Part shown: one piece after another, positions 22,460-61,499 of the stretch
Position numbering within the stretch: the first letter of the stretch is position 1
Layout of the letters: every line of letters begins with the position of its first letter
Notes under the pieces: generated by a model
Databases searched by the model: none
What the model was told of the DNA's origin: nothing
What the model saw: only the letters and a program-made list of their open reading frames with translations
Translations under genes and position numbers: made by a program
NCBI RefSeq assembly: GCF_003704095.1
Contig: NW_020844095.1
Coordinates: 62,001 to 126,000 of the forward strand
DNA: 64,000 nt
Direction: 5' to 3'
From: Pocillopora damicornis
Taxonomy: Eukaryota

Positions 22460-23371
22460 ATGAAAGAAGTGAAAACTCAGAGAGATTGGCATGACATCGC
22501 CTTTCGCTTATCAGGTATGGTGTTCAAGATGATATGACGATTTATTTACTCGCCTAAGCCGCGCTGTTTACCACGCATCTTAACTGATGCAAGTTTTAAT
22601 TGAGAGAGAATAATTGTTCATACGAGAGTGTCGCGAAGAATAGTAAAATACTCTGACAATTTAATTGCTAAGAATTCGAGAACAAGGCTCGTCTTCGACC
22701 AGATATCTTCCTTCAAAATAAGAGCATTTTTGAAGCAAATGGATCTAAGCTGCAGTCGAGCCAGGGTCTTTTGACGAAGTGACGCCATTTTCACATCTTA
22801 CTGGTTCGTGTCTACATCCGACGAATATCGAAAAGTCGTTGTTAGAGATCATGAAGAGAAATACGGCAGTTTTGAAATACTAGTTTTCAAATAGATTTGT
22901 TTCTGAGATTACTGTTTCATTGGTGGTTACTTTCTCTTAAGCCTTCCGACACGCGTGTTTTTTTCGCTCATCCTTTTGTTCTGAGAAGCTGAAGCTCATT
23001 ATATCCGGTCGTCTTTTTACATTGCAGCTCTTTGTGGAGGATTTGAAAAATACGACATCGTGGAAGATACAGGCTTTAGTGCTAAGAATAGAAGAAAATC
23101 TTCCCAAGAAAGACCAAATGACCAAGACTTAATCAGGAGAGGCTCTCTTCCCCAAGCACGTAAGAAAGGAACTCAGGCTCCACTCCAAGACTCACGCATT
23201 TCCCTCACCAAAAGAAGTTTTAGTGACGGGGTAGTAGTTGTAGAGAAGAACACGGATTTTTCAACAAGAAAAATCGACAGATCGCCCAAATCACATTCAC
23301 TGGACTTAGACGTCTCGTCTTTCGACTTCAGCGAGCTCAGGAGCTCAAGTTTATGCTCTACGGAGTTATAG
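22460..23371 (+). CDS. CSTEL-family gene 1, two coding exons (22460-22514 and 23028-23371), ~132 aa, ending ELRSSSLCSTEL
   Basis: accATG at 22460 reads MKEVKTQRDWHDIAFRLS; phase-1 donor G|GTATGG at 22515 and acceptor ctttttacattgcAG at 23027 join in frame with the 23060 ORF (which the track starts at GTG); shared C-terminal motif. Confidence 0.75.
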
Positions 23372-26300
23372 ACAGTACATAAACATTTTACAAGGCCGCT
23401 CACAAGGCAGCTTGGCTCGGGACGAAAAAAAACACTGAACCAAATGAAAGCTTTCACCTATTTATGTTTGCGTATATTGTTTATTTGTATATATGAAATC
23501 AAGATGTTAAAATTTCAAGGCCAAAATTATGTACCATTTTAGAAGTGAAGGCTAAGGTCCTTAGCTAAAAAAAGCTCTAGAATAATAACTTATTATCTAT
23601 TGTAGCCGGCCAGACTACAAGTCCTACAAATTAAAAGTCAAGTATCAAAGTATTGAATCCTTTCGTTGAGTTTGCTTTTATCAGCCAAATATTGGCGAAA
23701 TAAGTTTGTTTTTGTTCTTTAAAATTTTATTCTGTTGCTCTTCCCTAACTTCGCGTGCAAAGTTTGAGAGCGCAAGTTCCTAAGGAACTTCTCACTCGAA
23801 GCTTTAAATTTAGCGAGATGCATATCGCTGTTTACAAATTTAGAAGTGTCCCGTAAGTCGAGGAGGGATATCCATTTCAAGGCTCTTAGAGCCAGATGCG
23901 ACTCTTGCTATAAAAACATAAAACTCATTTGTTCAACAGTACAACATTAGTTATGTTTATCTTGTTACGCAGCACACATTTCCATTGAATTCAGCGAGGA
24001 AATGTGCTTAAAAGCAACGTTTTTCGACTCCAAGAACCTCTCCAAGCGCTCGAGGTATTTCCTGATTGAGGACGTAAGCACGAGAGCATGTCCGAGACGT
24101 CAATTGACCTCTTTTTCTTCTTGGCTTACCTTGGTTTCTCAGGAATTTGCTAAATCACAAGTGATAAGGGAAAAAATCCGGCAGTTAATTTGCGAAAATC
24201 TCATTAGGATCTGACCTCAGAAATGCGTCCAGAAAGTTCGCCGAAAATGATCCCATAGTATCACTTCAATCCTTTGTTTTGTTTTCTGCTAACGTATCGG
24301 CAATGAGATATTTTACAAATACTCGCGGATCTTTATGTTAAGCTTTCATACGAACTATTGTCTAGACGAATTGGCTTCGGATGATGCGAATTTCTTTGGA
24401 TTTTGCCTCAAGATTTAGGATTTTTTCGCAGGCAAACCCCAGTGCCTCTTTGAAAGTTTATAAGGATTCTCGAGGCTCTTGACATTTCAATGGAGTCTTT
24501 TGAAGTTTCATTTCTTTAATCCCTTTAAATTTTCAGAAGAAGCCGACACTATCACTAACATTTCACTTTGTGTCATTAACTACACCTTTCAGAGGTGAAC
24601 CGACAGAGTTTTACGTGCCAAACGGTAACAATTTTTCAAGCCCGCTTCTCGCCTGTAATACGCCGAAATTCATAAAATCATCGTTCGATTCTAAATCTAC
24701 TTTGATTTTCCTGCTTTACCGGAGAGTTATTATCAAGTATCCAACTGTTAATCTCCAACGTTTTTCTAATAGAAATATTTGTGCTTCGTTATGTCCAGCT
24801 TTAGACTCTCGACTCCCTATAGATTTTAATAACGCGTGAGGAGTGAGTACAGTTGCATGAAAAGTACGATTTTTACGACAACATAAAAAAACGATGTCTC
24901 TGTGCGCTGGGTAGTCGACGATGTAAGGTTAGGAGATAAATTTTCACGCGTTGGCTAACGATCAAAAGCCAGGCAATGAATTTTTTTTGTAATGAATTGT
25001 TATCGTTTGGCTAAGGATGCCTAGTCCTTTCCGATGCGGTGGCGAGCTTTCTACTGTCATTCAGTCTTTTCTGGGCGATGAAGTCGATTAGTTACATGAA
25101 AAAGAACTACTGCATGAGGTAGTCGAAAGGTCTTGCTTCACAGCGGAAGTGACTGCATTGTGAAACAATCGATAACAGTTCATTTCTCAGAAGTGTATTC
25201 ATCACTACCACCTGATTTTGTCACTATAAATAACTAAACTTTTAACGATATGAGGTTAATTTTTAGAAACCATTTAACAACGTTCAAAGCCTTCAGTTCA
25301 TTTGAATTTACAATTTTGGACATTTAAAACAAAAAAAAAAGAAAACATGTTTGCATACTTTCAAGATTGTTTGCATTATTTTTCTTTCCATTTAAGAGAT
25401 AAATTCTAGAAAAAACAATCTCGACAAGAGCCTTCACCTCTTTTATTGCTTTGAGAAGTTTTCGTGGCAACAAACGCCGGAAGAGCATTTCCCTTGTTCA
25501 TAAAGGGCAGAGATACAAGTTGACAGTGCTATCTCGGGTAATTATTGTGGATCCGGTATTTTTCCTTTTTTTTCCTCTTTTTTTTTGGTTATTTCCTGTG
25601 ATTCGTGACGATGTAGGAAACCACCAGTTGCCAGACAATAGTGGTTGTTGACGAAAAAATGATAAAAGAATGATTCATCATCTTCTTGTGAAAGTGAAAA
25701 TTTATGTTTGATGCTCGCTTGCCTGTTATCTTAATTAGCAAGTCTTTTCAAAAGAGTGCTTCTCAAAACAATTAATTAGATTTAATTGAAAAAGAGCGGT
25801 TTGAAGCTGGATTAATCTTCTCTTACGTAAGCACTTCACGAAATTTTCAGAAGGTATTTGGCACTGTTTTTGAAGGAAAGGAAATAGCATTGCAACATAT
25901 ATAATGGAGGAATCAGTTGTGGGGTTAGGAAAGTAACCAGACTGAGTACTGTAGCACTGAAAGAGCAACACGAAATGAAACGAGAAAAAGTGTCGATGTT
26001 TACCAAATGCATGCTTGGTACAAGCGAGAGTGTAAACTGCGATTAGCAGATGTTAAACAGCGCAAAATCCGATTATAAACATTGCGCTAAATGTCGTAAT
26101 GAGAAGCACCGACCATGCGAAGCCACACGCGAGGAAGAAATTAACAGAATGTACATAGTAAAAGGAGTTAGCCCATTTAACCCCAAGTGTGATCAACATT
26201 CAATTTCTTCTTACAGTAACACTGCTATGGGAAAGATAAAGGTGCTGAGAAAAAAAACAAACAATCCGGAAGGGAAAGACGCCGTTGGACATGTTTTTCT

Positions 26301-28454: not shown

Positions 28455-28604
28455 AATAATACATGGTTGCTTGTAGATTTGTAGATATGGAATGTCTCTC
28501 ATCGTGTTCAACTCAACATCTCACTCGTTCGCTGCGCTCCTTCGTGAGCTATCGAGTCGAACAATCGAAGAGAAATTCCATATCTACGTGCACCCATGTA
28601 TTAT
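28455..28604. mobile_element. Palindromic MITE-like element
   Basis: Inverted arms aataatacatgg...gtagatatggaat / attccatatctac...ccatgtattatt around a ctcactcgttcgctgcgctccttcgtgag core. Confidence 0.65.
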
Positions 28605-29674
28605 TCTCTATTTAGCACACAGAACCCAAGCTCTTACACATTTTGTTTAGATAATTGTCCTCATTCCAAGCAGTTTTAAAATGCTTAGGTAACTACTGTC
28701 AAATCGGAAAGCTAATGTTTCCATAAAAAATATCCTATTTGGAATCATAACTAAAGAATGCTCTTTAACGAATTTGCAGATTGCAATTGATTTATTGGAA
28801 AAATCTTTAAGTAGGCAGAGTTGACCTTTCCACTTAGCATATCCTATTTGGATGAGTATTTGTACAATGCAAAATAATTCTGTGGCACTACAGGAGAGGT
28901 CAGCTCATTCATAGAATTCAAAAAAGAATTTTGAAAAGATTATCGATAATAAAGACTGTCTGGAGAGGGATAGTGAAGTCAATTTGAATGAATATAACTA
29001 GTTAAGAGTCGGAAAACATCAAAGTCAGCCCTATATCAGTGTTGTGCATTAAGTATGTCAGCAATTGCTGAAACAATTACTGAGGTATGAATAATGAAAA
29101 CGCCAATTCAAAAGAAAATTGAGAGCAGAATTGCATTTTATAAAGTATAATTGAACATTATAACTGGTTCAATCATATACTATTGTGCTGTAGCCTTTAT
29201 CACGTCAGATCTCAAGGAGCTGTTACCCGTTTATAGGCGTACACACTTTCAAACTTGTTCACAATACCTACAATGTATCTGTAGCTTAATACTACGGGTT
29301 TATGCCAAACTTGAATGCACCTTTAATAAACTCTCAGATAAACAAATGTAAAGATTAAAGATGTGTAAACGTGTAAACGTGATTCGTCTGAAAATAAATA
29401 ATAATACAAATATCTACATACAAATGTGATAACGACACGAATCACGGCTACCGGGGTTACGTAAACCTTACGTTAACTATCTAAAATAATTTGGCAGTTC
29501 TTAATGATAAACAAATGCAAATGCAAATTCTAGTTGCTACGACGGTATCATTTAAAAATGTCAAAATCTTAGGTTTTTTCATATACGTTATATTCCTATT
29601 AATATAATAACTCTGCTATTAAAATACGTTGCTTTACATGTCCATAACAATTCTGGAAAACAGTACCGGTTTGT

Positions 29675-32469: not shown

Positions 32470-32904
32470 ATGAAATGTGAATTACGCAAAGTTTGGGCAA
32501 TTGTTACTTCAAAGAAGTCAGAAAAACAACCGAGGCCACGCTCTAAGTCCATTTCCTGCTCAAGAGAAGCTTCACATCCAGAAGCCAGTATTCTCTTTCA
32601 TAACAAAGAATTTGAGATTGAAAAACAGACTCACATCCCCTACCGTATCAGGCAAAGGCGACGACGATCTCAGCCTGAAGGAAGAAAAGGCCAAATAGGT
32701 CGTGGCGACCCACGGAATAGCAGCCCTTCTATTAAGAGAGAGATGGACGCCAGTAAAAAACGTCTTTCCACAGACTTTCTGCAAGGCCTTGAGATCGAGG
32801 ACAAACAAGCAATTTGGAATCCACTTAAATTAACGAAAGTCTTCAGTGACACTAGTATTCAAGATGGTTTTTTGACAACCACACTTTGTTCAACAGAGCT
32901 TTGA
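32470..32904 (+). CDS. CSTEL-family gene 2, single coding exon, 144 aa, ending QDGFLTTTLCSTEL
   Basis: ATG with A at -3, proximal TATA box, RPRSKS and RRRSQP motifs, shared C-terminus. Confidence 0.85.
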   Translation: MKCELRKVWAIVTSKKSEKQPRPRSKSISCSREASHPEASILFHNKEFEIEKQTHIPYRIRQRRRRSQPEGRKGQIGRGDPRNSSPSIKREMDASKKRLSTDFLQGLEIEDKQAIWNPLKLTKVFSDTSIQDGFLTTTLCSTEL

Positions 32905-34835: not shown

Positions 34836-37800
34836 TCTACATAAAAGTCATTTGAACTTGGCCATCATTCTCCGTACCCGTAATGTGCCCTTATTTACGC
34901 TCTTTTATTATTAAAAATTTTAATTATTAATTAATTAATTATTTTAAAATTTTCAAATAAGAACCTTTTTATAAGAACGTTCAGACTGAGATAAACCAAA
35001 ATTTTAAGAACATACCAAGCACATACCCAAACTGAGAGTCATTCAAGAACGTCTTTACTTTGCTCTTTTTTGTGAGCAGTAAAAATAAAGGTAAAAGAAA
35101 TGTAAAACTGTGGTCTGAAGAGAAAGTTAACTGAAATACATAGGGGCCCTTTTTAAACAATGATAATAAAATAAGGTTTTCCTATTGCACGATACGCTGG
35201 AGAACAGCTCAGTTTGTATTATGGTTAAACTTAGACCGCTCACGTCCGCACTGATTGCTATTGAAATACTATAACTCACAGCTTTAAATGTTAAGAACGT
35301 TTTTAGGGTCAAATCGCAAAAAAAATAATAATAAAGCTCAGCTTCAGCCCCACAATTAGACGCTCTTAGCAAATAAAAGGAGTGTAATACAAAAATGAAG
35401 TCCATTCCATTTTAAATACAAACATTCTTCCTCACGAACACTGATTTTGCAGCGAGTAACCAAATGCAAATAAAATGTAACTCGACTTCCACTTTAAGCT
35501 AAGCATTTCGATTTAGTGCATCTGAAAATACCAATCACAAAGGCTCCTAAAATGAATAATCAAGCTTCTGTTATTTTGTTAAAAAAAAGTGCTAGTTGTT
35601 CATCGTGATGAGAAAAGATAAGAGATTGGTCAATATTCCCCACCTGGAGGAGGGGGGGAGGCAGAGTCGGAGGATTTTGCTCGAATCACAATAAAATTTA
35701 CCCGATCCCGATAAGGTCTCTGTAGTATTCTAATGACACTGCCCCCCCACCCCGTCCCCCAATTAGCTGTCATATGTCTCCTCCTTAGACGAGGTTAGAG
35801 ACGAATGAACACTCTTCGTTTCCCCTGAATACCATTTGATCCTCCCCAAAATGCTCAACCCTCTCCTCCCCCTACACGGGGCATTCAATAAAGACAGGTC
35901 CCCTTAAAAATGAAGTATCATCGTTTATCTCATGAAATAAACCATAGTTACTCTTCGTCATAAGGTGACGTGGAACCAGTCGAACCCATCGCCTAAAAAA
36001 GAAATTTTGGAATGGAGCAGTTTTGTTTGAGGATCAACGGATTTCATCTTAAAAAAGCCCTAAATTGCAAAATTTTGTCAAATTACAATGAATAATTAAA
36101 TAAAAAAAATAAGCAACTCAACATCATTGAAAATGCAGTGGATTGGGGATTAGTTGGAGAATTCTTGCCCAGATTCCGTTTTCTTTTCGAAACTTTTCAA
36201 ACTGGATATAGCTTTGTTCATCATCCTTTGGTCCTGGTTGCCATGTTACGTTGTCGCTTATCGACTAAAGTTTCATTTTTTTTAATATCTAGGATAGTTA
36301 AGCGATTTAATCGCAAACTCTGTTTCTTAAACACCAGCAAANNNNNNNNNNNNNNNNNNNNNNNNNNNNCCCCCCCCCCCCCGAAAAAATAATAGCAACA
36401 TTGAACTGGCACTAAAGAAGAGAAGCAAAGCGTACACATGTTTGAACACCCATAGAAACTTCATTACTACCATGATAACGTCGCAACGACGCGCCAGGCC
36501 AAAACACTGCGTAAACAACCTGATTTGTATCTCAACCTACACCACCTTAAAGAATACCGTCGAAACACCGCGACAAACACCGGAAGTACTTGCATCGTGG
36601 AACTTCCTATAAATAATTTATTGTTTATGTCTGTCTCATTTCGGTGACCTCTCGGTTCACTAGTGACCTTAAAATTCCAAATTCTACATGTCGGTGAACC
36701 TAGAAGCGAGCAGACACAGTGTTGAGTTTCAAGTCGGTTATCAATCCAAGAATTGACTTCCTCGCGTAAGACAAAAACCGCGACCGCTCCGTCATATTAT
36801 ACGCATTGCCCGCAAAATTGACGGGCAATGCGTGTTTTTCGTTATGAATCACTTTTTAAACGGCGGATAAAAGGGAACTGAAACCACCCTATTTCATTAC
36901 ATTAACCTTGCTAAGAGACGGGTTATTTTCTAAAATTTCTCCCACCCTCCAAGACTATTATACTGACGATCCTACTCTCATTGGCAGTCTATTTTTTGTT
37001 GTCCCCTCTCTATACTCTGTTAACGACGACTGATCTCCCCCCCCCCCCCCCGTACATTTCCCCTTAAATCGTATCATCGCCCCCCAAAAGCCCCCGACCC
37101 TCCCTCCCTCCTCAGGCAATTGATAACGACTATTAACTATCTTTCATTAAGCCAGGTATTGTCTTTCCAATAGAAAGAAACGTGAGGGCATTCGTTTTTG
37201 GCAGATATCAGGTTCCACATCACAAATTTTCCAAACACGATAACCGTTAACAGACTTTTTAACTTTATTTTAAACCTTATTTTCACTACTACTTGAGTAG
37301 TGTTCATTATTGCGAGGATCGCTTCCATGTTCATTTCTTTATCCACATTTGACATAGATGATATTCATATATTTACAGTCATTTAGACTTTTTAGTAATC
37401 GAACCAACTTCTTAGTCGCGATATACAAGTAAAGTCTTTAAAGTCCTTAGATTACAACTTAAAACAAGAACCTAGAAAAAAAAACCGCATTCATATCTTT
37501 TAGCATCCGCCTCTCAGCAAAATTAACTTGTGACTCCCTGGCGAAAGAATAGGCAGCTACTTATGTCTGCTCCTTTCAAATGACTTTAGATCTTTGAAGG
37601 GTAGACACAATGAGCAAAAACTACTCACAGGGAAAGAAGAAAAACAAAAAAACATTGGAAAGACATCGTTTGTTCCTTTTCGGTGTTTTCGTTTACGTTT
37701 GTAAATTGTTTCACTGTTCATTGGATTCGAGATAACCAAGCAGCTCAGATATAATTCCATTTACCTAGGTTTCCTTTTTTTTCCTCTACAAGTCCTTAAG

Positions 37801-39256: not shown

Positions 39257-39580
39257 TCAAAGCTCCGTTGAACAGAGTGTTGTAGTAGGCAGCTCTTGAA
39301 AGCTTGAAGCATCCAGTTTAGTACTGAAATGTTGGTCGAATGCCTCATCAGTTGAATAGCACTGAAAGCGCCTCACATGTGGAACGGACTTGCTTCTACC
39401 CTGGCGACGTTTTTTTGCGATTTCCGCCATGTCTATGATTTGGGCTTCCACTTCACTAAAACTGTTTTCCATCACTGGGGTCGAATTACCGCTGCAAGAA
39501 GAAGTTTCCCTGGACGCTGAGCTGATATTCAAAGAAATGGATCGACGCCTTGGTATTTTACCATACTTTAACTTCTCCAT
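39257..39580 (-). CDS. CSTEL-family gene 3, single coding exon, 107 aa, ending QELPTTTLCSTEL
   Basis: ATG-initiated ORF with RRRSIS and RSKSVP motifs and the shared C-terminus. Confidence 0.85.
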   Translation of the reverse strand: MEKLKYGKIPRRRSISLNISSASRETSSCSGNSTPVMENSFSEVEAQIIDMAEIAKKRRQGRSKSVPHVRRFQCYSTDEAFDQHFSTKLDASSFQELPTTTLCSTEL

Positions 39581-44825: not shown

Positions 44826-45578
44826 ATGGCCACAGTGAGACAAAAAATGCGTAAGAGAAAAGATGGTCATATTTGTTTGAAAAATATTTCTATGCAACAG
44901 GAGATTGGAGGGTCAGCTGAAAGCATTCCTTGCGCTAACTTCGAGAACCGTCCTTCTGTTGGTCAAAGTGGGGAAGAGCTTCGAAGAACCAGATCGTTCT
45001 CCCTGCCAAGAGTGTTAAAGAAAGAAAACGACACGCAAACCTTACTTCAGATCCTGTTTAGAACAAAAAACCGGCTTAAAAAAAGTAACTCAAATTGCGG
45101 CACTTTGTTTACAAGTAACGAGAACGACAAAATATTTAACCAGGACGACAATTGCACTAAGGTTAGTCAGCCGCCTTCCCAGATTGAAGGCTTAAAATTA
45201 GAGCAAAATAACTTTGTGATTCCTACAATTTGCATTCAACCACCCGAAGAAGTGGACAGAACCTCTCACTTAACGCATCCAATCACAACAGTCGAGCAGG
45301 CGAACACAGCACAACAGCTGGCAAACGATCCAACAAAGGGTTTAATGGAGGATCCTAAACAGGCTTCAGCTATAAGCCGCTCTGAAACAACCACTACAAC
45401 TACAAAGAGAGGAAACAAAACGCCACCGCGAAGGAAAAGAAGCTTCTCGTGGAGCGATATTTATACCATTGGGAATTTGAGAATTAGCCCTACGGAGGTA
45501 TTGAAAGGGAGCAGTTCGTGGAGTGAGCTCCTCAACTCGGCTGCGAGAGAAACCGACCTGTGCTCAACTGATCTGTAG
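44826..45578 (+). CDS. CSTEL-family gene 4, single coding exon, 250 aa, ending RETDLCSTDL
   Basis: Good Kozak context (aaaATGg); long hydrophilic ORF with RTRSFSLP, RKRSFSW and PTICIQPP motifs; shared C-terminus. Confidence 0.88.
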   Translation: MATVRQKMRKRKDGHICLKNISMQQEIGGSAESIPCANFENRPSVGQSGEELRRTRSFSLPRVLKKENDTQTLLQILFRTKNRLKKSNSNCGTLFTSNENDKIFNQDDNCTKVSQPPSQIEGLKLEQNNFVIPTICIQPPEEVDRTSHLTHPITTVEQANTAQQLANDPTKGLMEDPKQASAISRSETTTTTTKRGNKTPPRRKRSFSWSDIYTIGNLRISPTEVLKGSSSWSELLNSAARETDLCSTDL

Positions 45579-47042: not shown

Positions 47043-50000
47043 CTACTCGTATTTGAGATGGTAATTTTAACAATATGATATGGACGAAAACGATCATTAA
47101 ATCGATGTAAATTTTTTATGCTTTAAGTGAAGTGGTGATTATTGAGCATCAAGAATAAAGTATCACATGGATCCTATTCAAGAGAGTCCCGCCCCCTTTC
47201 TAGGAGGCCATCCGACTGTAATTATATTGGGAGTGATCCCTCCTCGCAAATGAAAAACGTGTTTTCTCGAGTTAATTAGATCGGTATGTTTTGAGGAAAA
47301 TACTTACAATCGGTGTTACCCTTGTAAATGGTTTAAACACGGGAATTATTGTGATTTTGATGAGCACTCATTCCTCGAAAGTGCCCGCATCTTAAACAGC
47401 CTCATTGGAGTATCTAAATCTTCAGCATTGTAATGAATATTCTCACTCAAAAACCAGTCTGCAACGTTTTGATTCCTATTTTTGGTGCTTGAATTGCAAG
47501 ACTATTCAAAGAAAAGACACAGACCACATTAAAAAAGGAAAACCACTGAACAAACAAAACAAAAACAAGGTCGATAGGCCAAATCCCAGGATACTATCCA
47601 ACGTACAGGTTTTTCATGTAGGCTACACGAAAAACCTATACGTTGTCATGGTAATTGCAAAGCGTGCTTCGGCCCTGGGTATACATAAAAGGAAATATGT
47701 ACGGTAACAGGTCCTAACTTTTTGATGAGCTGAACACAACTTTCTGAAAAAAGCATTTTTATGATGATTTTCACTCGGAATGTCCAAAATCAGTCTCTGT
47801 TTTCGACGACACCATTTCGCCCTCAGTCGTATGAACATCTCAGAAGAGATCGAGGAGTCTCTGATGAAAAAGCAACTTCTCAAGTAAATCCTTTCTCGCT
47901 CAAAAGTACCTTTGAGGTTTATTAAGTTTCAAAGATTCTATTGGTGATCATAGATCGACTCTGTTATGAGTAATTTTGAATCTACAGATTTAGTCTCCTA
48001 TAAATCAAAATCTGTAGGAACAAGAATCATCGCCGGCGCTTATCACCACTCCGACGATTCATTTACAAAATGCCAGAAATAGCCCATGTCATGATCGAAT
48101 TATCACTTTTCTTATCGTTACGTGCACCTCTTCAGAGAGAGCGACTAAGGAGACTTTCTCCTTTTAATGATGGCATTAAGTTAACGTTGACCAAAAGTGT
48201 ACCTGTCCCTCATAAAATTCACACCAAAGTTATTGCTTGTCACATTGGTTAATTTGATGGGTTTTCTTCTTCTTAAATCCTAATCCTTCTCACGGAGAGT
48301 GTTCTTATATTTTCTATTGAGTTTATGAAACGACAAAGGCGCACGGAGTCGAAAACGTGCCATCAAAATTATGATTGAAGAGTGAAAGTCGTAATATTAT
48401 GTTTCTTGATCTTTCTTCCATTTTGTTGCGTTCTTTTGATGACATATGACTTAAGTTACGATTGTGTTGTTGACATACACAAGCTGTTTACTGCATGCCT
48501 AAACGTAAGGCGTAGTGCAATACTGGAACATGTTTCTGAACTGTAACGATCAGGATTGAACGATGATTGAAAATTTCACCAAAGTCAAACTTGACTAGAA
48601 CAAACGTGAAAGCATGCCAACCCTTGAGTAAATAAAGGATGTTGATCTCAAGCAATTTTTTTTTTTTTTTTACTGACGTAGTGATCAAAAACATCGTGCG
48701 AAGGGATTTCAATGTCTGACAATGCAGACATCTACGGGAGGAGCTTTCAAAAGACAACTCCTTCACTGCTTCGGCATTTTGTAATCCTGGCCAATTTTCT
48801 CCATTCGTACTTCTCTTCCACCAACTCTTTCCCCTTTGGGATTTTTTTCTGCCCGAGTAAACTTTTATCTAAACGTCCTCATCCAATTAAAGTTATAATG
48901 ATGTAGCTCCGTGAAGTAATTGAATGATTTAGTGGAGGAAATGCCATTTTCTACACTTCTACTGATTCTTAAACGGATAAAAATCGTAGCTGCCAGGCGT
49001 TCAATCAAAGTGTAATTATTTCCAGGAGTCTCCCAATCATTCTTGACACTTTTCTGTCTAGAGTGATTTATTGAATTTGACCAGGGATGTAAGCAGAACC
49101 TCTATGTTTATCAGTTTTATACTTACGTTATGCTCTGAAGAGCTATTCACATTAAATTTCTCTAAACACTATCTGTACAACTAACTCAAAGAATTTTATG
49201 AAAATGTAACGAAGTCCTCGTTACTTCAGTCAAAGGATTCCTGAGGAGAATTTCTACTTTGAGCATTCTGTGACAAGGCCGAGTGTTAATGGAGTTTCAA
49301 GTTTATTATTAGGAATCGAAAACCGTGGAGAGCGTCACGACACTTGTAAAAAGTCAATCCCGGTATGTTTTCTCTTCACTTTATTTCGTACAAAGCAGCA
49401 ATTCTTCAATAGATGTTTCAAAAGATCAGTTGTAACAGCTTGAGACAGTTTTATAAAACCACGCTCGATTCTTTTGGCATGAAGCGTTTCCGCTTCTCTG
49501 AAAATGTGAATGTTACAAATTTAGATCTTACAGTTGACTGATTTCGCTCAGGAAACCAGGGGTTGTTAATTGATTATTGGCCTCAAACCGCTTTCTAAGT
49601 AACATAACAAATGTTTTATTTGTGTACAAGTTAGATCTTCCTTTTAGATGTGTACAAAAGTAAAGGATAAGTTATTTATGATAGGATAACACTAGTCGGC
49701 ATAGATAAGCTTAAGATCATGTGATAAGACATGATCCATCATTCTGAGTAAAACTATTATACAATTTGACTGCTCGAATTTGGGTCAACATTTCGACTGA
49801 CCTGCTTAGAAATGCATTACACGATTAGGCAATAAAAAAACCTCGCATAGTCGAAGTGGTTGTAACTTCTTCAAAGAAACAAACAGTTCCAGTTGACTGC
49901 TGAGGCATCATTTACATTCAGAACGGATTACAACTCCTTGACCCTTTTATTGTCAATAAATTCGGCTCTTTTAGAGCTTTTGCTAATCAAGGATTTTGCC

Positions 50001-50262
50001 ATGCAAACATCCGGATCTAAACATTAATAAATCGCATAAGATTTAATCAAGTTTCTGCTGTAATTCCAGATAGACCGTCCGTATTCCACCAGAAACTACA
50101 TTTCAGCTCGCCACAACGTAGACAACAGACAATTTATTTATCAATTTCAAGTCGCACGGGTCAAGTACTAAGGCAACTCAGTCTATGGCAGCCTTACATC
50201 AACTTATCAAAGTAACATCACATATTCTTGTTCTCGATTTCAAGTATTGAATGGCAAACCTT

Positions 50263-51258
50263 TCAAAGCTCAGTTGAACACAGATCTGTCTCAATCATAC
50301 CCTGTTCAAATCTAAATCCTTTTAAGGCCATATAGCTTAAGCGTTTTCCATTTGCGCACTCTTCGCCGTTCGAGGAAGAAGTAACATAAATTTGGGGGCA
50401 TAGTTTGGCCGTGTTATTTCCGTTTGTTTCGTTTACATCTTCTGCCATGTAATTATGATTTGGTAACGTTCTAGAAATTGCGTTCTTAGTGCTGCGAATG
50501 CTGTCCACGTTGCCACTAAACGAATTGCTTCTAGTTCGTACCAGTTTTCGTGCACCTGGTTTGCCGCTGTCGTTCCCATTCGCTTGTTTATTAGGTTGCT
50601 TAGCTCCGTGTCTCCAGTTCAACAAACCAGTGAAAGACTTACTTCGTTTGGGACGCCTCGGTCGTTTCGCTTTTATCTTTTTGTCGTCGTGTTCCTCGGT
50701 CTGACTCTCTCCAACTGCAACACGATATGTCGCGGAAGACATTTCACAAGATCTTTCCTCACCCTTTCCGTTCTTGTCGGTTCCAAGGCCATCGACATTA
50801 TTTTCTTTGAGACTTTCCTCACTAAAACCATTTGCGGAGCTTCCTTTCCGCTCGTCAAATTGCTTAAGATTAAGGTCTTGGTTTGGACGTGTGTATTTTG
50901 CTAAATCAGAGCGAGCCTTCCGAGAAAGAACTGGCCGTAGCGCAGCTTTGATAGAGCTTCGGCGCTCTTTACATTCCACGTCTTCGTCCAGATCATTCCT
51001 CGAATGCCGTCTTTGTGTAATTAGTTGCTCAACACTGTTCGATCCTGAGGCTCCATCGTTTTCCAAATTATCCTCGGACAAAGTGTTCTCCGACTGAACG
51101 TCCAAGCTGCTCTTACCTGCTAATTCATCCGTGGAAGAGAACACATCACTATCACTGCCAGATGGAGATCGATTACGCATCCGGAGCCCAAGTTTAGAAA
51201 TCTCTTGGCCGAGTCGACGAACTGCGGATGTCATAACTGTACGGTTGTCTTGTTTCAT
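50263..51258 (-). CDS. CSTEL-family gene 5, ~331 aa from the first ATG, ending GMIETDLCSTEL
   Basis: Open frame of about 1 kb; first in-frame ATG (MKQDN) at 51258 whereas the track uses TTG at 51333; possible upstream acceptor (acttAG, minus strand) near 51335; RNRSPS, KRSKSF, RTRSNSF and PQIYVT motifs. Confidence 0.88.
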   Translation of the reverse strand: MKQDNRTVMTSAVRRLGQEISKLGLRMRNRSPSGSDSDVFSSTDELAGKSSLDVQSENTLSEDNLENDGASGSNSVEQLITQRRHSRNDLDEDVECKERRSSIKAALRPVLSRKARSDLAKYTRPNQDLNLKQFDERKGSSANGFSEESLKENNVDGLGTDKNGKGEERSCEMSSATYRVAVGESQTEEHDDKKIKAKRPRRPKRSKSFTGLLNWRHGAKQPNKQANGNDSGKPGARKLVRTRSNSFSGNVDSIRSTKNAISRTLPNHNYMAEDVNETNGNNTAKLCPQIYVTSSSNGEECANGKRLSYMALKGFRFEQGMIETDLCSTEL

Positions 51259-53598
51259 TCTCCAGAATCCATTTAAAAGGCAGCCAGATGCTCCCCTTGA
51301 AAAGACATCTACGCCAATGACCTCGAATAACAACCTAAGTATATAGGTTCTTGTTTATATTGTACACTATTGTGTCTTGGACTGTTTTGGTAAGATTCCG
51401 TTCTTGATATATCACTCAACCAAAAGACTGCAAGTTTTCGAACAGCAAATATCAACTCGAACAACGCGAACCAATCAGTTCCTTTTCCATTCCTGTTACC
51501 AGTCCGTAGATCTATCGTTTCGTCGAGATATTTATCGTCTGAAGAATTGTCTATTCTAGGCGAAGAGCTTTTGAGTGTTTTTCAATTGAAGACCAGACAA
51601 ATGAGACAACGATCACGGCCGGGCCAAGAGCTTTTCGTTGTGAATATAGACATTCAATCAGGCAAAACACAAGCTGTGTATTGTGTTTCGTGACGCACGG
51701 CCAATTAATAATGCCTGGTGTCAGGTTGCAGTACTTAGAAAGGTTCAAGTGACTTCTTTCGTCTTTCGCGTGACCTCGCTCTAGACGCTGCAATCACAAC
51801 ACAGCTGGAGGACATAAATAGCTCCTAATTCCATTAAAATTGATCAAATAACTGTTTCGCTGATAAGGTAGTGGCATACGGACGGTAAATCGAAGTCACG
51901 CAAAGGAGGATTATCAGCGTGTGACTCTTCCTCATCTGTCAGAAGGTAATCTTTTAAGAACTCTTTTGAAGGACGTGAAATGATTTCAAAATAACCAAAG
52001 ATTTGCGAAGCAGATTGCTCATTTAAGCTGTAACAAAGTGTGCATGTAACTGACATTTGGCGCGAAACTGTTTATGATCTGTCATTTCGTTCCTTTGTGG
52101 AATTCTGGTTCGATCTTGATCGATTAAACGCCGAAAAAAAGCCATTCTAATTTCTTCTTACTATACCAAACTTGCTCAATAATAATAAATTAATAATTAA
52201 AGTAACAAAGGAACAGATACCTTTAGTGTGGAGCAAGGGCTTTCATAATATCGTTAATATTGAAGCTGCAGAGCTTCAGCGATGATATGGTTCGTGTTGC
52301 TTATAGACGAATGACTGCCAGAAATACTAGTTACAGGGCTGCTTACTCATCTTAACGTTGACGACTGGAGTTTACTCCTGTCATAACCCGGATTGAGAAA
52401 CTAAGCTTGCGTGAGTTATTTGAGAACTTCCCCTCAATTGCATTCCTTTGCAAGGCCACAAAAACTTGTATTAACTTTTGGGTGAAAGACAATTCCGATA
52501 ACAAATGTGCCTAAACTACCCACTCGGCAAAGGAGATTCAAAAGAAACATCTTACATCCAACCGGAAAGACTCTAAAACTTCCGCGTGATGCAAAAGCAT
52601 ACATATTTTCGACCTAATCTCTGATAGGACATCTCATATCCATGCCAGCAAGACGCTGAGAAATATCAGATATCGCGGATACGATTATCTAACTATTTTG
52701 GAATTTCCTCTGGTTTTCATCGTTAGCCTTCATGAAAAGGTTTAAGAAAATGAAATACATCCGAGCAGATTCAAACGCTTGGAATGTTTGCCTCAGCGTT
52801 TTAATAAGTTCGGCATTTAGTTTGTACATCAATCCCTACCTCAAACCTCTTGACCTTCAATTGAATATCAGCTTAAGTGGTCTGTTCAAAAGAAAAGTTT
52901 AAATTGGTCTGATGAAACCTTGGTAAAACTCAAGCTGCAAAAAAGTCTAAAGGATTCACTTAAATTGTGAGCATTCGTTTTAGTAAATGAACTAGCAATT
53001 TCAGAGTTTGAATGCCAAGGTTCCGAGCAGTCCATCCTTATCTGGAACATCTCTCTGTCGATATCACTTCAGTCAGTCGGCTTGATGTCTGGTGCTTTTC
53101 AGTGAGTGCTCGAAGTAAAGATAAAATCATCGTCAATGGTCTATGATGTTTAAAAGCCGTTGAATATTTTGTAGCTATTAATGGATACCGAGGCGACTCG
53201 AAATCTCACCCGATTCAATTCAGTGATTGAGGCCTACAACCCGAAGATGCCCCTTACGGGTACGAGGGATTTTAATATTAAACTTTTCTAGGAATTCTTA
53301 TTCGATAAATGGCCCATTAATTAGTTCCAGGAGGAATACTCAACAAACTCCATCGATGGATCCTCTACTAGCTGTGATTTTCAAATCCCTCCCCATTTAT
53401 AAAACACCTTTAGTTCAAAAGGTGTATTTCCCATATCTAGAACAATTTCCTAATAACTGCTGACAGTATGCGTGATTGCTTTGTTGTTTCCTCAATTCGC
53501 ACTGTGATTGGCTTAGAAACCTTGCATCACTCTTCTTTCTATGAATTGCGAATAGTGCCAGCCTGAAGAAAAATGTAAGCTTTGATGTAATTCGCACC

Positions 53599-55151: not shown

Positions 55152-56399
55152 AATTTTAAAAAACCCTGGTTTGTGTATCTTGAAAACCAAAGCAATCCAT
55201 TTCGACCAACGCCATCTTCTCTCGTCAATGTTTCTTTTTGGTATCTTATCGCCTATTTTATTGTTTTTTTAGTTTACCAAACTGACATAATGATTTACCG
55301 TCCATCTCAATATTCTTCATCCTCAGCCATTTTTACTTCTTCTTGGTTTATCTTTCTTGTTCCTCCATCCTTTGTGTTTGTTTACAATCCGTGTCATTCT
55401 CTTTCATCCTTAAGCATAACCGGAAGTTTTTGATTTAATCTTTTTTAACTGGTTTTCTTTTCCATAGCGAGCGATTATTTTCAAGCTTCTTTCTGTTTAA
55501 AGGAATACGTCTTCGAGTGACGAGAAAAGATGCGAGCTTATATTAATGTAACACAAAACTAGCTAGACCATTTTTCAGGGAAATCTGAGGCTGTCCGAGT
55601 GGAAAATTACTTATCAGTCAGGCGGATCTTCGAGTTTTATTTAATTTAAAGTTTTCATTTTCCCTGGAGAAACTGTGTCACATAGCCAAGTCGAAAATTC
55701 CTTCTAAATGATATTTCAAACGTAGGTCTATTGGTTCATCGTCCTCGTTTAAGAAAAAATTGGCATTTCCCACGGGCAGTAAAGGGTTAAGCAACGGGTA
55801 AGCTTTCTTGAAATAACCGACCCATATCAGGATCTATTTTGTCTCCCTTGCTCTACTTAATGACAATTACTGATTTAGTTTTTGAATGATTTGTTTAATA
55901 CAAATGAGCCGAAATAACAGCATCATCAAATAATACTTTTCAATGGAAAGCTCATATTGCCGCGGCTACGTGGTGTGATTTTATTCATGTCTCAGCTCAG
56001 TATCAATCATAACTAGGAAATGAAAAATTGCTTTTGTAGGTGCACAAGCACTTTGACATGATAAAATACAAATGTCACATTTTCCGCTTGTTACAACTGA
56101 ATCTGCACTTGAAAACATCAGGTTCGTGTCCGTGAGAAATCTGTAACCTCTTCTAAAATTTTTTTTAATCCAAGCTTAAACAAGGAGAGAGAGGATTAGG
56201 ATAAAGATTCACTGTTGTTATGAGGAGGTTACCTATACACTTAACCGCATTACAGAGAAAAAAAAATCGTTTTATCCTAAAAGCAAACTTTTAAATACTT
56301 TGTTAATAAAGCTAAAAATAATGCCTGCCCGTGTAGAGGACTCGCAGTGTCAGGTTTAATTAACTCCCCAATATTTCCTTGTCATGCACCACTTCGAGG

Positions 56400-56553
56400 G
56401 TTTATTTGGAACCAACATATAATAACCAGTTCCCAGTTGGCGTGTTAGCTCAGTTGGTAGAGCGTTGCACCGGTATCGTAGGGGTCATGGGTTCAAATCC
56501 CGAACGAGGCCTATTTCCACTATGTTCATAACTGCAAGGATCGCTTCCATATT
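56400..56553 (+). mobile_element. tRNA-derived SINE
   Basis: A-box TAGCTCAGTTGGTAGAGC and B-box GGTTCAAATCC, followed by a SINE body (tgttcataactgcaaggatcgcttccat) also seen at ~37300-37330; no proper acceptor stem. Confidence 0.7.
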
Positions 56554-57618
56554 TTCCATCCCATGCAAATTTAAATCGAAAAAGCCGGAAAACTTAATAT
56601 CAAATTAGTTTTAATCTGTTGTCACTCATTGTCCTTAAAGGCTATTTTTAGGTTACATTTGCGCATTCAACAGGAATCTAGGTTTCTCTTCAGAACACTT
56701 AAACTGAGCGCTATTTTAATGCATGCTTTTTGCGTTACAGTTATTTCCTGATTAATTAAATATTCGATTATCCAATAAAATCATGCAAATAGCAAATATG
56801 CAAACGCCCTTAGGGCATGGTTGGAAGAAAATCAAAAATAATTTTATCCAATCTTTATAAGAAAGTTTAGTTTCTTTTAAAGCTGTCTGCATGTAGTCGC
56901 ACTCAATTCTGTTTTCTTTTCTATGATAATCTAATGAATGGAATGCGACTTTTATTTATTGAGAAGACAAAACACTACACTGCTGTCTTGCTAGTTTCCC
57001 TCGTTAACATAAATAAGCATTCATCAATTAAACATTGTCACACATCCAGATAGAGGAGAGACATTGGCCAAAAATTTCAATATTACTATTCAAATATGCA
57101 AGCATCTCGGAATGCTCTTGTTCAACAAACAAAAGGTATTCTTAAACAGCTTTGAATTACTTTCAAGGCCTACAACGATTTTAATATTTTAAGAAAATAT
57201 TTATTTCTTTTTAAGAAAACATTATCTTTCTACAAGTCACGTCACTTTGCAGATGACACGATCTGTCAGAGATAGGGATTGGTCACATGACTGCCAAAAG
57301 CCACTTAAAAGTGGAACTGTGGTTACTAGCTGATTAAAATCAACATTAACGAGGCGGTGAAAAGGTGCAAAGGACATCATTTCTGGTAATTCATCTACAA
57401 AATCTTATAGTGTCGCCTTTCTGATGTGATGTCGGTTGGAAAAGTTTGGAGAAAGGATTTCATATCGCGGAGTAATTGAGAATCAACAATTATCAAAGTT
57501 TAAGGTGTACATGGTCGACATCACGTCAAGTTGTAGATCACGTACAGACGAAAGGCTAAGGTGAAATATCCCTAAGTAGACCTGTTTAATACCAGCATTT
57601 ATCGAGACCTGTAGAACA

Positions 57619-57978
57619 ATGAGCAGTCCTGTTATTCACCCGGGTGACAAGGTGACCATTACATTGAGTTTAGACGGCCAGGATCTGTCAAACAGTAACG
57701 AACTGGGTAACAAATCAAAACAGGAAGAATCCAACCTTCAGAAACAAATATTCCTCAAGAAAGCCGACACAACGTCCCCAGCAAAACCACCCTTAGTGAC
57801 GCGGAGAACGAGCTCACTACTCAAACTAAACATCGAAGGACTGTTAGTTGTTCCAGAGTTGGAAATAAGACTCAGAAGGAACTCTTATGGTGGTAAGTCT
57901 GTCCACGATGAAAGACACACCGAAGTTGATCCATCGGATGGAATGCTTACCACATCACTGTGTACAACGGAGCTTTGA
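57619..57978 (+). CDS. CSTEL-family gene 6, single coding exon, 119 aa, ending SDGMLTTSLCTTEL
   Basis: acaATG start; RRTSS and RRNSY motifs; shared C-terminus. Confidence 0.85.
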   Translation: MSSPVIHPGDKVTITLSLDGQDLSNSNELGNKSKQEESNLQKQIFLKKADTTSPAKPPLVTRRTSSLLKLNIEGLLVVPELEIRLRRNSYGGKSVHDERHTEVDPSDGMLTTSLCTTEL

Positions 57979-60900
57979 TGGACACTGATAGCGTAATGTA
58001 GCGATTGGATTCCAAAATATGTTGGCGTAAATGTTTTAGCATACTTATTTTGCCTCTGAGCATGACATGTTATGAAAATTTGAAGTAGACAGAATAGCCA
58101 TAAGAGCTTAAAAGAGCATGAAGAAAGAAGATTGCTTCCGTTGTGGAAAGCGGGTTTGATATTAACCATCAGATTCCAGCACCATGGAATGACATGATAC
58201 TTACTCTGAGACTGTTACTCGTCTTAAGCAACTAAGACACTCTCGGTGGTTGAGGGATTCAGTTGAGGCTTTTTTCAGAGTGAAACCTGTGCATTGAACT
58301 GCAAAAATGAAACCCACACAAATGAGCCTTTGCGTGTAATCACGAATGCTCATTACCGTAGTCAGAAAATCGTTTGGAAGCTTGGATAAACATCTGATGT
58401 TCTGTGGGAGTCCCAGTCTTTGTTGATTCCTTACAATATTTCTTACTCGGACAGCAGCGACTTAACGGAAACATTGTAATTATCATTTGAAGCTGAAGGT
58501 CTCAATGGTGTTGTTAACGGTTTTATATGCCCTTCCTTTCAATTCCCACGAGTTTAAGAAACATTTTAAGGAACGGTTCAACGTTACTAAACGCAATACC
58601 ACCAGGAAAGATAAGCTTATTAAGACCGCCGTGAAGCTAGAGCCTGCTGTGTAATATTTCTCGAAAATGACAACAAAATCAGTCACGAAAGACATTTCGC
58701 CCTGAGGGACCCGACTTAATGTGCAAAGAAAACAAAAGATTTCTCATAAAGCTCTTGACCGTAAGAAATAAACAATTCGTTTGCAGCTAGACATGTTAGA
58801 TCATTTTGAGATTTCTGTTTGGCAGAAAGAAATTAAAGTTGTTCAGGTTGAGAAGAACTCTGCATTTCTTTAGAAATAAATGTCCCGGATAACATTTTGT
58901 TAATTACCTATGACGATATGTTTAACCTGTGATAACAAACGGTCTGATAACTCCATTATCCTTAATTATCATGTGAAAGTATATTGACTTTGGCTGGGTT
59001 TCATAACATGTATTTCTTTCGATAAAAAATTGCTTAGTAAAAATTCGCGATAGGATCGGTAAGATAACTAGAAATTGAGAAATACTAGATTCTAATGCAC
59101 TAAACTTCTTAGTGTGGAACAATTTTTTAGTTCATTGCCCAAGGCTCTGAGAGACAGCAAGACGACATTTAGGTAATTATTTATTGATTACGTCACACCA
59201 TCAAGTGGATCCTATTCTTTAAGAATGTTTTGTTGTGTGTAAGTAAACAATACAAGCACTTGTGTCTTTGAAGCAAAGGGTGTTTGTTTTTACTTCTAGG
59301 CGATCCAAATAATACAATGAACCAACAGTTGTTCGCAATAATAAAGCACACCACAAAGTTGTGCCATGTAATTAATATTATTATAAGTTTGGATCTCCGC
59401 CTTTCGTATCAACCATCAGTTGCCGCATCTTTCTAAACGGAACATCAATTAATTATTTTCATATTGCCTTGTCAAGCCTGTCAGCAAATCTTATATTGAG
59501 CAACATCAAATTAGTCATCGTGAATTGAAACTCCGCCTCTCTGTGTCCTTTTTTTTCGTGGTAAGCCCGACTGCTCAAGACTAGTCGAAGACGAGTTTTC
59601 AATCATCAGCAAAGTCAAAGGGAAGGGAATAAGCTGAAGTTCTGTAGCGACGCTGACATAGTTTTCCAAAGACTTCTTCTGGATATCTATGGATTTTTAG
59701 ATCTTCATAAAACTAATTGAGGCTCCTATAGATTACAGTGAGAACAAAAACATTTTCTGCTAACAGTATCTGCTCCAATTCACAGTCAGCAGCTTCTTTT
59801 CTCATGTTCAAGTGTCTCTCATCTCTAGTTAACTTAACAGATTCAAATTATTTATCAACGATACAAAAATGCCTATCAAACAAAATCGGTAGTTATTCTG
59901 AATAGAATTATAATTGCTTATTTTATCCTATCTTTTGATTGTTCGAGATACACGTGACCTTAGTTTCATCCAATTGAAAATTACGCCTTCAGGGCGCGTC
60001 TCCAAGTATTTTTCCGCTCTTTCGCAGTTCAGTTTGTATCTAACCCAGGAAAGATAAAAATTAAAAAGGGGTAACAGAGAACTTTCTGCTTCATCTTCAA
60101 TAACTCAGAAATCACGAAAGAGAGTTTCTGGATTGACTGAACCGCTCAAAACAATGTGAAAACTTAATCTGAGAAATTAATGGTCAAAATTCCCTGGTGA
60201 ACAGCTTGTGCTGCATATATTGGACGTAGTAACGGCGTCGGTTGTTCCAACATCAGATCAATCTTTATCCGGCGGATAGCGCAGTAAATTTGAATAACAC
60301 TTCTCCGCTGGATAGCGCTTTATCTGTTGGATATCGTTATCCGTCCTTGAACTGGGCGCTGATGTCAATAAGAGATAGGGCACATCAAGTGCCGAAGTCT
60401 ATATTTGTAGTCGACAAGAAAGGATATATCACGATGTTTTGAGGGCCCTGTCCCAACGTTTCTTTTATATGTAAATGACAGGATACATTAGAGAGCCCTT
60501 TTTCTGACATTTCCTATGCCTTTAAAAATTCTTGTATCCTGAATTGATTAGCCAGAATCGCGCATTTTCATATTTCTTAATTTACCTTTAAAAAAAGCAA
60601 TTTAATTATAGCTTCACAAGAATACAATAGAGCATTCATTTTAACAAAAAAATGATTAATCATCTGCCACAACTGTTTGTCCTTGTGACAAACCCATTGT
60701 CGCTTGCGCTTTCTAAAACGCTTTTAATTCGCTTTCATGAAACCATTGCACGTTCACAAAAGCACACTATCGAGGTGTTGAAGGACAGAGGAACCGAGAG
60801 ATTGCTGACTGACCAGGCAAATCACTCACAGAGAAGGTTAACTACTGGTAGTAATTCTTGTGAGACAAAAGAGCATTTGACATCAAGGTTAACTTAAATT

Positions 60901-61025
60901 ATAGGAGTAGTCTAAGAAAATTTTCGAAATAAAAGAATTCATTATTAATTGCATAGTTGTTAAGTGGACCTTGTAATTACTCATAACAGCGCAATCGAAT
61001 TCGGTTACACGAGAAGTTGGTAGAA

Positions 61026-61499
61026 ATGTCAAAATCTGTTTGTTATTTCGATAGAAATTTAACAGAATTGAGAAAATCTGACGCCATAAAAATTTGCAAG
61101 AACAACTTCAGTGTGGATAGAAACCCAGCAGAATTGAAAGAACCTGCGGAAACAACGTGTATATTTACAAATGTGGACGAACCAACGGAAAGAAACCGTG
61201 TTTTGGGTCTGAGTGATGGCGTAGGCAAAGAAAATGACCAAATATTGATCGAAAATATATCGGAAAGTGTTACAGAGACCGAAGAAAAGGACGAAAGGAA
61301 GCGTGAAATAAGGAGAAAACGAAGCAGCTCACTGAGTTCTTTAGCACTTCTTAAGCAAACATTACAAGTGATTACAGTTGATGACAAATACGAACAGAAA
61401 CTACGAAGGGTCAGCTCGGTTCCCGGAACATGCAACTCAGGAGAAACTCAACTTGAAGATGGGTTATTGACAACAACGTTTTGTTCCACAGAGTTATAA
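61026..61499 (+). CDS. CSTEL-family gene 7, single coding exon, ~157 aa, ending EDGLLTTTFCSTEL
   Basis: First ATG at 61026 (track starts at TTG 61017); RKRSSS and RRVSSVP motifs; shared C-terminus; AATAAA at 61513 and 61691. Confidence 0.85.
   Translation: MSKSVCYFDRNLTELRKSDAIKICKNNFSVDRNPAELKEPAETTCIFTNVDEPTERNRVLGLSDGVGKENDQILIENISESVTETEEKDERKREIRRKRSSSLSSLALLKQTLQVITVDDKYEQKLRRVSSVPGTCNSGETQLEDGLLTTTFCSTEL

Follow-up and report, generated by a model that had tools for sequence, protein, structure and literature searches.

The described systems that come closest to the genes reported here each share part of their traits. The Bearded/E(spl)-complex genes of Drosophila form a tandem cluster and encode small proteins without a globular domain, whose paralogs are known by short motifs; by analogy, in both systems the paralogs would presumably dock to one common partner. 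YAP/TAZ and the NHERF ligands ending in [DS]-[ST]-x-L have AGC-kinase/14-3-3-type sites together with a class I C-terminal Leu ligand. The mammalian BEX/TCEAL genes, as generally described, are clustered and lineage-restricted, have compact coding regions and encode small disordered proteins whose termini are conserved. Here we analysed a stretch of 64,000 nucleotides from the coral Pocillopora damicornis (hereafter the window; G+C about 37%), which corresponds to positions 62001–126000 of contig C730 in an assembly of 234 Mb and 4393 contigs. The window contains seven genes of an array of ten, whose small products end in a common peptide, [LF]C[ST]T[ED]L, directly followed by the stop codon (hereafter the tail).

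As an analogy, the array resembles in kind the known clusters of small motif-defined regulators and the phospho-switchable PDZ ligands. There is no sequence relationship to the Drosophila proteins and the Bearded motifs appear to be absent; the coral proteins end in a PDZ-type C-terminus and are rich in RRxS/RxRxxS sites. YAP/TAZ and the NHERF ligands are either proteins with folded domains (WW, TEAD-binding) or membrane proteins, whereas the coral proteins consist of motifs only, with a constrained tail of 13–18 residues and an invariant Cys, and no homology between the two was found. The BEX/TCEAL genes are regarded as young (eutherian) and their sequences as unrelated, whereas the coral array predates the coral–anemone split.

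Full-text searches of a literature library found no paper mentioning the tail motif or the Nematostella accessions given below, and nothing relevant for STEL combined with PDZ. The members belong to no described family, and their closest database entries are uncharacterised orthologs: Nematostella A7RSY2, Desmophyllum pertusum OS493_008493 and Oculina patagonica ACROYT_G043800 are true family members with the same tail and basophilic sites, and have no function, family name or Pfam domain attached. Families of this type are invisible to domain-based annotation and whole-protein clustering. A first-pass annotation of the same sequence had expected the genes to escape annotation; this holds only in part, as some gene models do exist, under no other names than ‘hypothetical protein’ (the Desmophyllum and Oculina entries) or ‘predicted protein’.

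Recurrence of the tail and size of the family

Translated in all six frames, the window contains [LF]C[ST]T[ED]L-stop exactly seven times, in the same seven open reading frames (ORFs) and at the same positions as given by the first-pass annotation. The stop codons end at 23371, 32904, 45578, 57978 and 61499 on the plus strand and begin at 39257 and 50263 on the minus strand. When the tail and stop are written as a degenerate DNA pattern, the seven matches compare with 0.01 ± 0.10 in 100 dinucleotide-preserving shuffles. The Leu, Cys, Ser and Thr codons vary among the seven copies, TAG, TGA and TAA are all used as stops, and the DNA 3′ of the stop codons does not align; because the codons vary and the following DNA is unrelated, the constraint on the tail lies at the protein level and is not that of a DNA repeat.

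Across the genome, the tail pattern gives 26 matches versus 19 with a reversed control. Ten of the 26 fall within about 54 kb of contig C730, namely the seven of the window and three immediately beyond its right end, where intact members are found at 127315 (minus strand), 132865 (plus strand) and 138825 (plus strand). A family profile run against the whole genome recovers 10 of the 11 members (m1 is not listed) and nothing else convincing. The family comprises 11 intact members in the genome, 10 of them in one array with genes on both strands. The set of seven originally described is thus enlarged to ten genes in about 54 kb plus one on contig C192, and its proposed tandem expansion is borne out. 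A tail-pattern match on contig C4129 was rejected as chance, as the ORF has only 8 amino acids. The members are as follows; coordinates are those of the window for m1–m7 and of contig C730 for m8–m10.

22460–22514, plus strand: m1 exon 1, ATG, 18 codons and 1 base, then a GTATGG donor
23028–23371, plus strand: m1 exon 2, acceptor AG at 23026–23027, ends in SSSLCSTEL-stop
32470–32904, plus strand: m2, 144 amino acids, ends in DGFLTTTLCSTEL-stop
39257–39580, minus strand: m3, 107 amino acids, ends in QELPTTTLCSTEL-stop
44826–45578, plus strand: m4, 250 amino acids, ends in ETDLCSTDL-stop, convergent with m5
50263–51258, minus strand: m5, 331 amino acids, ends in GMIETDLCSTEL-stop
57619–57978, plus strand: m6 coding sequence, 119 amino acids, ends in DGMLTTSLCTTEL-stop
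56678–59371, plus strand: m6 mRNA, unspliced, from RNA contigs with 5′ ends at 56678, 57005, 57285 and 57357
61026–61499, plus strand: m7 coding sequence, 157 amino acids, ends in EDGLLTTTFCSTEL-stop
127315, minus strand, right of the window: m8, 160 amino acids, intact ORF
132865, plus strand, right of the window: m9, 219 amino acids, intact ORF
138825, plus strand, right of the window: m10, 174 amino acids, intact ORF
Contig C192: m11, 135 amino acids, intact ORF

In the family-wide alignment the shared segment extends beyond six residues and reads [DE]-T-x-[LIV]-x-[DN]-G-[LFM]-[LR]-T-T-[TS]-[LF]-C-[ST]-T-[ED]-L; the near-invariant C-terminal consensus is [DE]Tx[LIV]x[DN]G[LF]LTT[TS][LF]C[ST]TEL-COOH. 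The Cys at position −4 is invariant in all members and homologs, and a basic Ser cluster lies 40–60 residues N-terminal of the tail. The working definition of a member adopted here is a small, domain-free protein with the C-terminus [DN/E]G-x-[LFR]-[TE]T-x-[LF]C[ST]T[ED]L-COOH and, N-terminal of it, one or more RRxS or RxRxxS sites. All seven window genes combine a C-terminal [LF]C[ST]T[ED]L-COOH with one or more such sites; m1, m3 and m4 do not conform to the [DN/E]G-x-[LFR]-[TE]T portion of this definition.

Gene structure and transcription in the window

The ORF lengths of 107–331 amino acids from the first ATG agree with those reported before, with the reservation that the long ORF of m1 has no ATG. 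m1 is a gene of two exons (22460–22514 joined to 23028–23371, GT..AG, phase 1), which give 132 amino acids in frame, and a TATAAA is found about 148 nt upstream of exon 1. The joined protein, which was compared only with P0070, a two-exon 132-amino-acid gene model from a congener assembly (GCA_942486045.1), differs from it at 2 residues; this model spans 912 nt, the same span as 22460–23371. Concerning m2, the related cluster representative P0058 shares its start Met and the hidden Markov model (HMM) match in the own genome has an E value of 5.7e-23. Without its tail, m3 is matched best by the m2-type HMM (E 8.6e-5).

RNA contigs from poly(A)/oligo-dT RNA of four studies were compared with one 6-kb stretch of the window (55601–61600). 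Contigs of all four studies cover 57285–59326 or more of m6 in one unspliced piece. One contig ends in 23 added A at 59371, with an AATAAA situated about 24 nt before this site, and the 3′ untranslated region (UTR) accordingly measures about 1.4 kb; the unspliced contigs and the poly(A) tail at 59371 identify m6 as a single-exon mRNA. In all four RNA runs the contigs of m7 start at 61000–61011, 15–26 nt 5′ of the ATG, and reach or come near 61600. In a related species, contigs of 2.0–2.4 kb from the m5 ortholog (86% identical) are collinear with 49625–52061 of the window and have no intron. Based on these data the window genes are real genes, mostly single-exon and independently transcribed. 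Of the seven transcripts proposed earlier, those of m6 and m7 were seen; those of m1–m4 are predicted from gene models and orthologs rather than observed directly, because the RNA contigs were compared with the one 6-kb stretch only.

Other RNA observations concern the surroundings of m6. At 57621–57872 two RNA runs have a second contig whose match to m6 is limited to these 250 nt of coding sequence and whose two flanks are unrelated; it may stem from a close paralog, from the allele of another coral that was in the sample, or from chimeric contig assembly. A pile-up of many very short RNA contigs, with a depth of up to about 750, is found at 56387–56553, about 0.7–1 kb upstream of the main m6 transcript. 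Each of these contigs runs on into a different sequence and the pile-up looks like an expressed multi-copy repeat. Also, two RNA runs have a 9-nt insertion in the m6 5′ UTR (57445–57449), a direct duplication of local sequence, which is an indel polymorphism between colonies or species.

Conservation and gene order

A family profile searched against 1.84 billion representatives matches 49 clusters at E ≤ 1e-3; the tail is present in all those read, nearly always as the very end of the protein, and in the alignments the orthologs of other species share the start Met. Each tested paralog (m5, m7 and m8) has its own orthologs across scleractinians, with identities of 44–86% for m5 and 46–51% for m8, and full-length orthologs down to about 36% for m7. 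When the m7 orthologs are aligned, hardly any columns are invariant apart from those of RKRSSSL, LRRVSSxP and the 17-residue tail, in line with the suggestion that the conserved function resides in short linear motifs. The ratio of nonsynonymous to synonymous substitution rates (dN/dS), one of the checks proposed for the ORFs, is 0.32 for m5 (against the 86%-identical ortholog) and 0.42 for m7 (against a 73%-identical one). Purifying selection is moderate and concentrated in a few short motifs.

Outside the corals the evidence comes from one named species, Nematostella vectensis, in which five members on both strands lie within 16 kb of a 20-kb stretch (DS469536.1:177990–198466, locus L012). 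The database protein A7RSY2_NEMVE (EDO45356.1, XP_001637419.1) is Nv3, in the middle of this cluster. The tails of the Nematostella ORFs were removed and the remainder scored against HMMs of the coral paralog types (8 models), with the following best coral types:

Nv1: m5, E 9e-13
Nv2: m6, E 3.9e-13
Nv3: m7, E 5.5e-3, a weak match
Nv4: m8, E 1.8e-5
Nv5: m9, E 3.7e-7

The type order in Nematostella, m5-m6-m7-m8-m9, is the order of the window and its right flank. Partial synteny is also seen in two further coral assemblies, with m6-m7-m8 as neighbours in one and m9, m7 and m8 in the other. Since the five Nematostella members stand in the coral type order, the duplications predate the divergence of Scleractinia from Actiniaria, and the array has remained together since then in its relative order. 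These genes constitute one hexacorallian gene family. The view of the first-pass annotation that the family is old is supported by the scleractinian orthologs of m5, m7 and m8 (44–86%) and by the Nematostella cluster; the synteny it had asked for is present, and its alternative, lack of conservation outside Pocillopora, is excluded by the homologs.

The 11 coral genes and the at least five of Nematostella are under selection, with an order conserved since corals and anemones diverged. The main interest lies in this deep conservation of a collinear array in which only motifs persist. The array offers a natural case of protein evolution constrained by linear motifs alone, as paralogs of one array align only at the motifs. 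As a lesson for annotation, short single-exon ORFs in the ‘intergenic’ DNA of cnidarians can be ancient genes.

Some gene calls of family members need correction. The Nematostella gene table for the DS469536.1 stretch calls only one of the five family ORFs as a gene, and a 100-N gap interrupts Nv5. P0051 (453 amino acids) is a gene-call artefact in which three neighbouring members are fused, and P0069 and P0086 are artefacts that have W at the stop position and read past the tail. P0034 and P0035 are longer versions of m8; their N-terminal extensions are an artefact of upstream read-through in the congener.

Disorder and internal motifs

In a Pfam search with 17 family proteins (m1 entered as exon 2 only), nothing was found at or near the gathering score. 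In the ESM Atlas m7 has no usable match, and the matches to m5 do not score above 0.82 (uncharacterised arthropod clusters, FAM189B, FAM212/INKA and DUF4797), which is at chance level in the calibration of the tool; they were not used. The maximum 19-residue Kyte–Doolittle mean is at most 1.03 in every member, so that no member has a transmembrane helix or a signal peptide. About two-thirds of the residues are polar or disorder-promoting. AlphaFold2 (AF2) models based on ortholog alignments have a mean predicted local distance difference test score (pLDDT) of 46 for both m5 and m8. The m5 model contains a single helix (residues 11–22, pLDDT about 79) and its last block averages 43; the m8 model has low-confidence helices only, and its last 33 residues are below 50. 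The family proteins, of 107–331 amino acids, are intrinsically disordered. The disorder and the lack of a signal peptide, transmembrane helix or recognisable fold, which had been read from the ORFs at first sight, therefore stand.

Each protein contains one to several predicted basophilic-kinase sites, either RRxS (PKA-type) or RxRxxS followed by a hydrophobic residue (Akt/SGK/RSK-type). The number of [RK][RK]x[ST] sites is 27 versus 10.4 ± 3.1 in shuffled sequences and that of RxRxx[ST] sites 13 versus 2.5 ± 1.5; neither number was reached by any of 1000 shuffles, and the enrichment is 2.6- to 5-fold. The 14-3-3 mode 1 consensus (RSxSxP) is present in m3 (RSKSVP) and m4 (RSFSLP), and RRVSSxP of m7 is related to it. 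A relaxed 14-3-3 regular expression gives 12 matches versus 2.3 ± 1.6 in shuffles, with none in 5 of the 11 members. Looking at the proteins separately, m3 carries RGRSKSVP, in which an RxRxxS and a 14-3-3 mode-1-like site coincide, and m4 carries RTRSFSLP and RKRSFSW. The best-conserved paralog, m5, has the N-terminal helix at residues 11–22, the sites KRSKSF and RTRSNSF, and a PQIYVT segment; this PxIx[IV]T-like segment is kept in some m5 orthologs and may be a calcineurin-type site. An N-terminal basic helix motif, [RH]RL[SG]xxIxK[LF]G, is common to m5, m8 and Nv4. The genes had been described as united only by their tail. Their likeness is indeed one of motifs only, but the basophilic phosphosites, the [DE]Tx[LIV]x[DN]G segment and the m5/m8 N-terminal helix motif are shared as well.

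The tail as a putative docking peptide

We consider it slightly better than an even bet that this is a phospho-switchable, disordered hexacorallian family that docks through a C-terminal class I PDZ-type ligand. In such a mechanism the free C-terminus would act as the docking peptide, most likely as a class I PDZ ligand with Thr at −2 and Leu at 0. The DG/NG turn and the Thr-rich strand before the end could add an extended, hairpin-like element that confers specificity for one hub protein; turn propensities suggest this extension of the contact. The variable disordered bodies would provide sites for kinases and, here and there, for 14-3-3 or calcineurin, so that the proteins could serve as small phospho-switchable adaptors or as competitive ligands at a PDZ scaffold, each paralog linking the common hub to a different set of signals. 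Control by phosphorylation through the RRxS/RxRxxS sites, some of them in a 14-3-3 mode-1 context, is likely as judged from the site patterns.

The [ST]-x-[ACVILF]-COOH rule (ELM: LIG_PDZ_Class_1) is obeyed by all 11 genome members and by the homologs read, which end in T-[ED]-L before the stop. The tail lies in an unstructured region in the AF2 models of m5 and m8, as the accessibility of a PDZ motif demands. A complex of the 40-amino-acid tail of m8 with the first PDZ domain (PDZ1) of a NHERF1-like gene of the same genome (E 6e-21 to EBP50) was modelled; it scored 0.50 versus 0.15 for the best of three controls, a verdict of ‘weak support’. Contact agreement between runs is at least 59% and the pLDDT of the partner at least 39. 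Of 78 solved complexes 51 attain the mark used for such models, as do 2 of 108 mismatched pairs; scores of 0.60 or lower account for only 5 of those 78 and for all 4 mismatches that passed. The model is compatible with PDZ binding and is no proof of it.

A number of points weigh against this interpretation. The calibration of the complex models does not cover peptides or disordered chains. The support for a PDZ partner comes from a model, and PDZ–peptide complexes are abundant in the training data. The NHERF-like domain was chosen as a candidate on the general preference for a C-terminal Leu. A PDZ ligand normally has 4–7 residues; in this family 13–18 tail residues are constrained, and among them the invariant Cys at −4 is not explained by PDZ binding. 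Phosphorylation is predicted from consensus sites. Direct RNA evidence concerns two of the seven window genes. As for the gene order, the assignment of Nv3 to m7 is weak (E 0.0055 among 8 models) and the m5-type and m6-type genes of Nematostella are each on the opposite strand compared with Pocillopora.

A further-reaching proposal, which we regard as speculative and rather doubtful, is that the family is an ancient collinear motif-only array of interchangeable, phosphorylation-gated ligands for one hub. The tail of 13–18 residues, a hairpin plus a carboxylate, would be a recognition code absent from the motif catalogues, the paralogs would plug different signalling inputs into one scaffold, and the kept order would reflect shared regulation. 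The invariant tail is in any case a defined peptide for a partner search in a genetically tractable cnidarian, which makes the partner directly testable. If the partner proved to be a polarity or transport scaffold of the NHERF, Scribble or Dlg type, the family would represent a cnidarian-specific regulatory layer on conserved epithelial machinery, and such a layer would be relevant to coral cell biology.

Alternative explanations

The length of the constrained stretch, which far exceeds a PDZ ligand and includes the invariant Cys and the DG/NG turn, speaks for a reader other than PDZ. The tail would then dock to 14-3-3 in mode III (pT-E-L-COOH), act as a C-terminal degron or be gripped, as a hairpin of 13–18 residues, by a cnidarian-specific domain, and its PDZ-like end would be incidental. 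Mode III sites have the form pS/pT-X1-2-COOH, a spacing that T-E-L-COOH might suit; 14-3-3 mode-1-like sites are already present in the bodies, and the verdict on the PDZ model was only ‘weak support’. The tail, on the other hand, lacks the upstream Arg usual for mode III sites, all of the approximately 60 sequences seen obey the class I PDZ rule, and the model with PDZ1 scored well above its controls (0.50 vs 0.15); we consider a non-PDZ reader unlikely. The same Cys raises a less probable option, in which the tail is a lipidation or membrane-targeting signal and the proteins are small membrane-tethered kinase substrates, with the Cys S-palmitoylated or prenylated through a motif of the extended C(x)3X type. 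Extended C(x)3X farnesylation has been described, and the Cys is invariant at −4 in every member and homolog, with Leu or Phe at −5 and LL before it. A canonical CaaX box was rejected, as it requires Cys at −3 and the family Cys stands at −4, followed by S/T-T-E/D-L. These following residues are polar or acidic and unlike known prenyl acceptors, T(−2), E(−1) and L(0) are as strictly conserved as the Cys although palmitoylation needs none of them, and there is no adjacent basic or myristoyl anchor. Retrieval to the endoplasmic reticulum by a KDEL-type signal (xTEL) was also rejected, as the proteins have no hydrophobic N-terminal segment and no signal peptide.

Two other explanations would deny that the ORFs are separate genes at all. 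In the first, each of them would be a terminal exon, or an alternative 3′ exon, of a single larger multi-exon gene or a small number of such genes whose 5′ part encodes a known domain; in its favour, m1 possesses an upstream exon and several ORFs stay open 5′ of the first ATG. That exon contributes 18 residues only, however, and the family genes are on both strands. The RNA contigs of m6 are collinear with the genome over 2–2.7 kb and have their own poly(A) site, those of m7 begin 15–26 nt 5′ of the ATG, and orthologs in other species use the same start Met. The stretches between the genes contain no long ORF with a domain, and a tblastx self-comparison of the window revealed no exons in common, upstream ones included, beyond one tail pair, so that there is no hidden common domain. 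This explanation is very improbable, and a chance pattern, an ORF borne by a repeat or transposon, or an assembly artefact can be regarded as refuted. The sole point for the latter group is that the window contains assembly gaps. The gap at 36342–36369 touches no member: it lies between m2 and m3, whose 3′ ends (32904 and 39257) face each other, is more than 2.8 kb from any family ORF and is crossed by no family reading frame. Against a chance pattern or a repeat stand the seven matches where 0.01 are expected, the unrelated flanks, the mere 11 intact copies in 234 Mb and the synteny conserved in four other genomes. We retain the docking of a disordered, phospho-switchable family through a class I PDZ-type C-terminus as the preferred interpretation.

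Neighbouring sequences

Two decayed copies of the tail are found to the right of m10. At C730:139054–139080 (plus strand, locus L006), about 230 nt past the m10 stop, a decayed tail ends in ..STTTLCSTEIEVL-stop in a frame that is otherwise closed; this is probably a relic of a partial duplication. At C730:141415–141549 (plus strand, locus L006 5415–5549) an ORF of 44 amino acids ends in ..DTALIDGLFTATLCSTKL-stop, has an E value of 0.0044 with the profile and is adjacent to repeat-like sequence. This ORF is a pseudogene or else the final exon of a divergent twelfth member.

To the left of the array the window contains intronless ORFs that resemble rhodopsin-type G-protein-coupled receptors (GPCRs), at 6851–7993 (minus strand), 2662–2961 (plus strand) and 8354–8532 (minus strand). 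Further GPCR-like loci are found at C730:44899–45885 and C730:52499–53011 (loci L002 and L007). One ORF of the set is complete, with 381 amino acids; the others, about 60% similar to it, are incomplete or relics. The set looks like a tandem GPCR cluster and has no apparent relation to the tail family. Also, a glycine-rich ORF with GGGGS/GGYSGGG runs is present at 4154–4411 (plus strand); a Ser/Thr/Pro-rich ORF overlaps it on the opposite strand and masked stretches adjoin it, and it could be a low-complexity coding sequence or a simple repeat.

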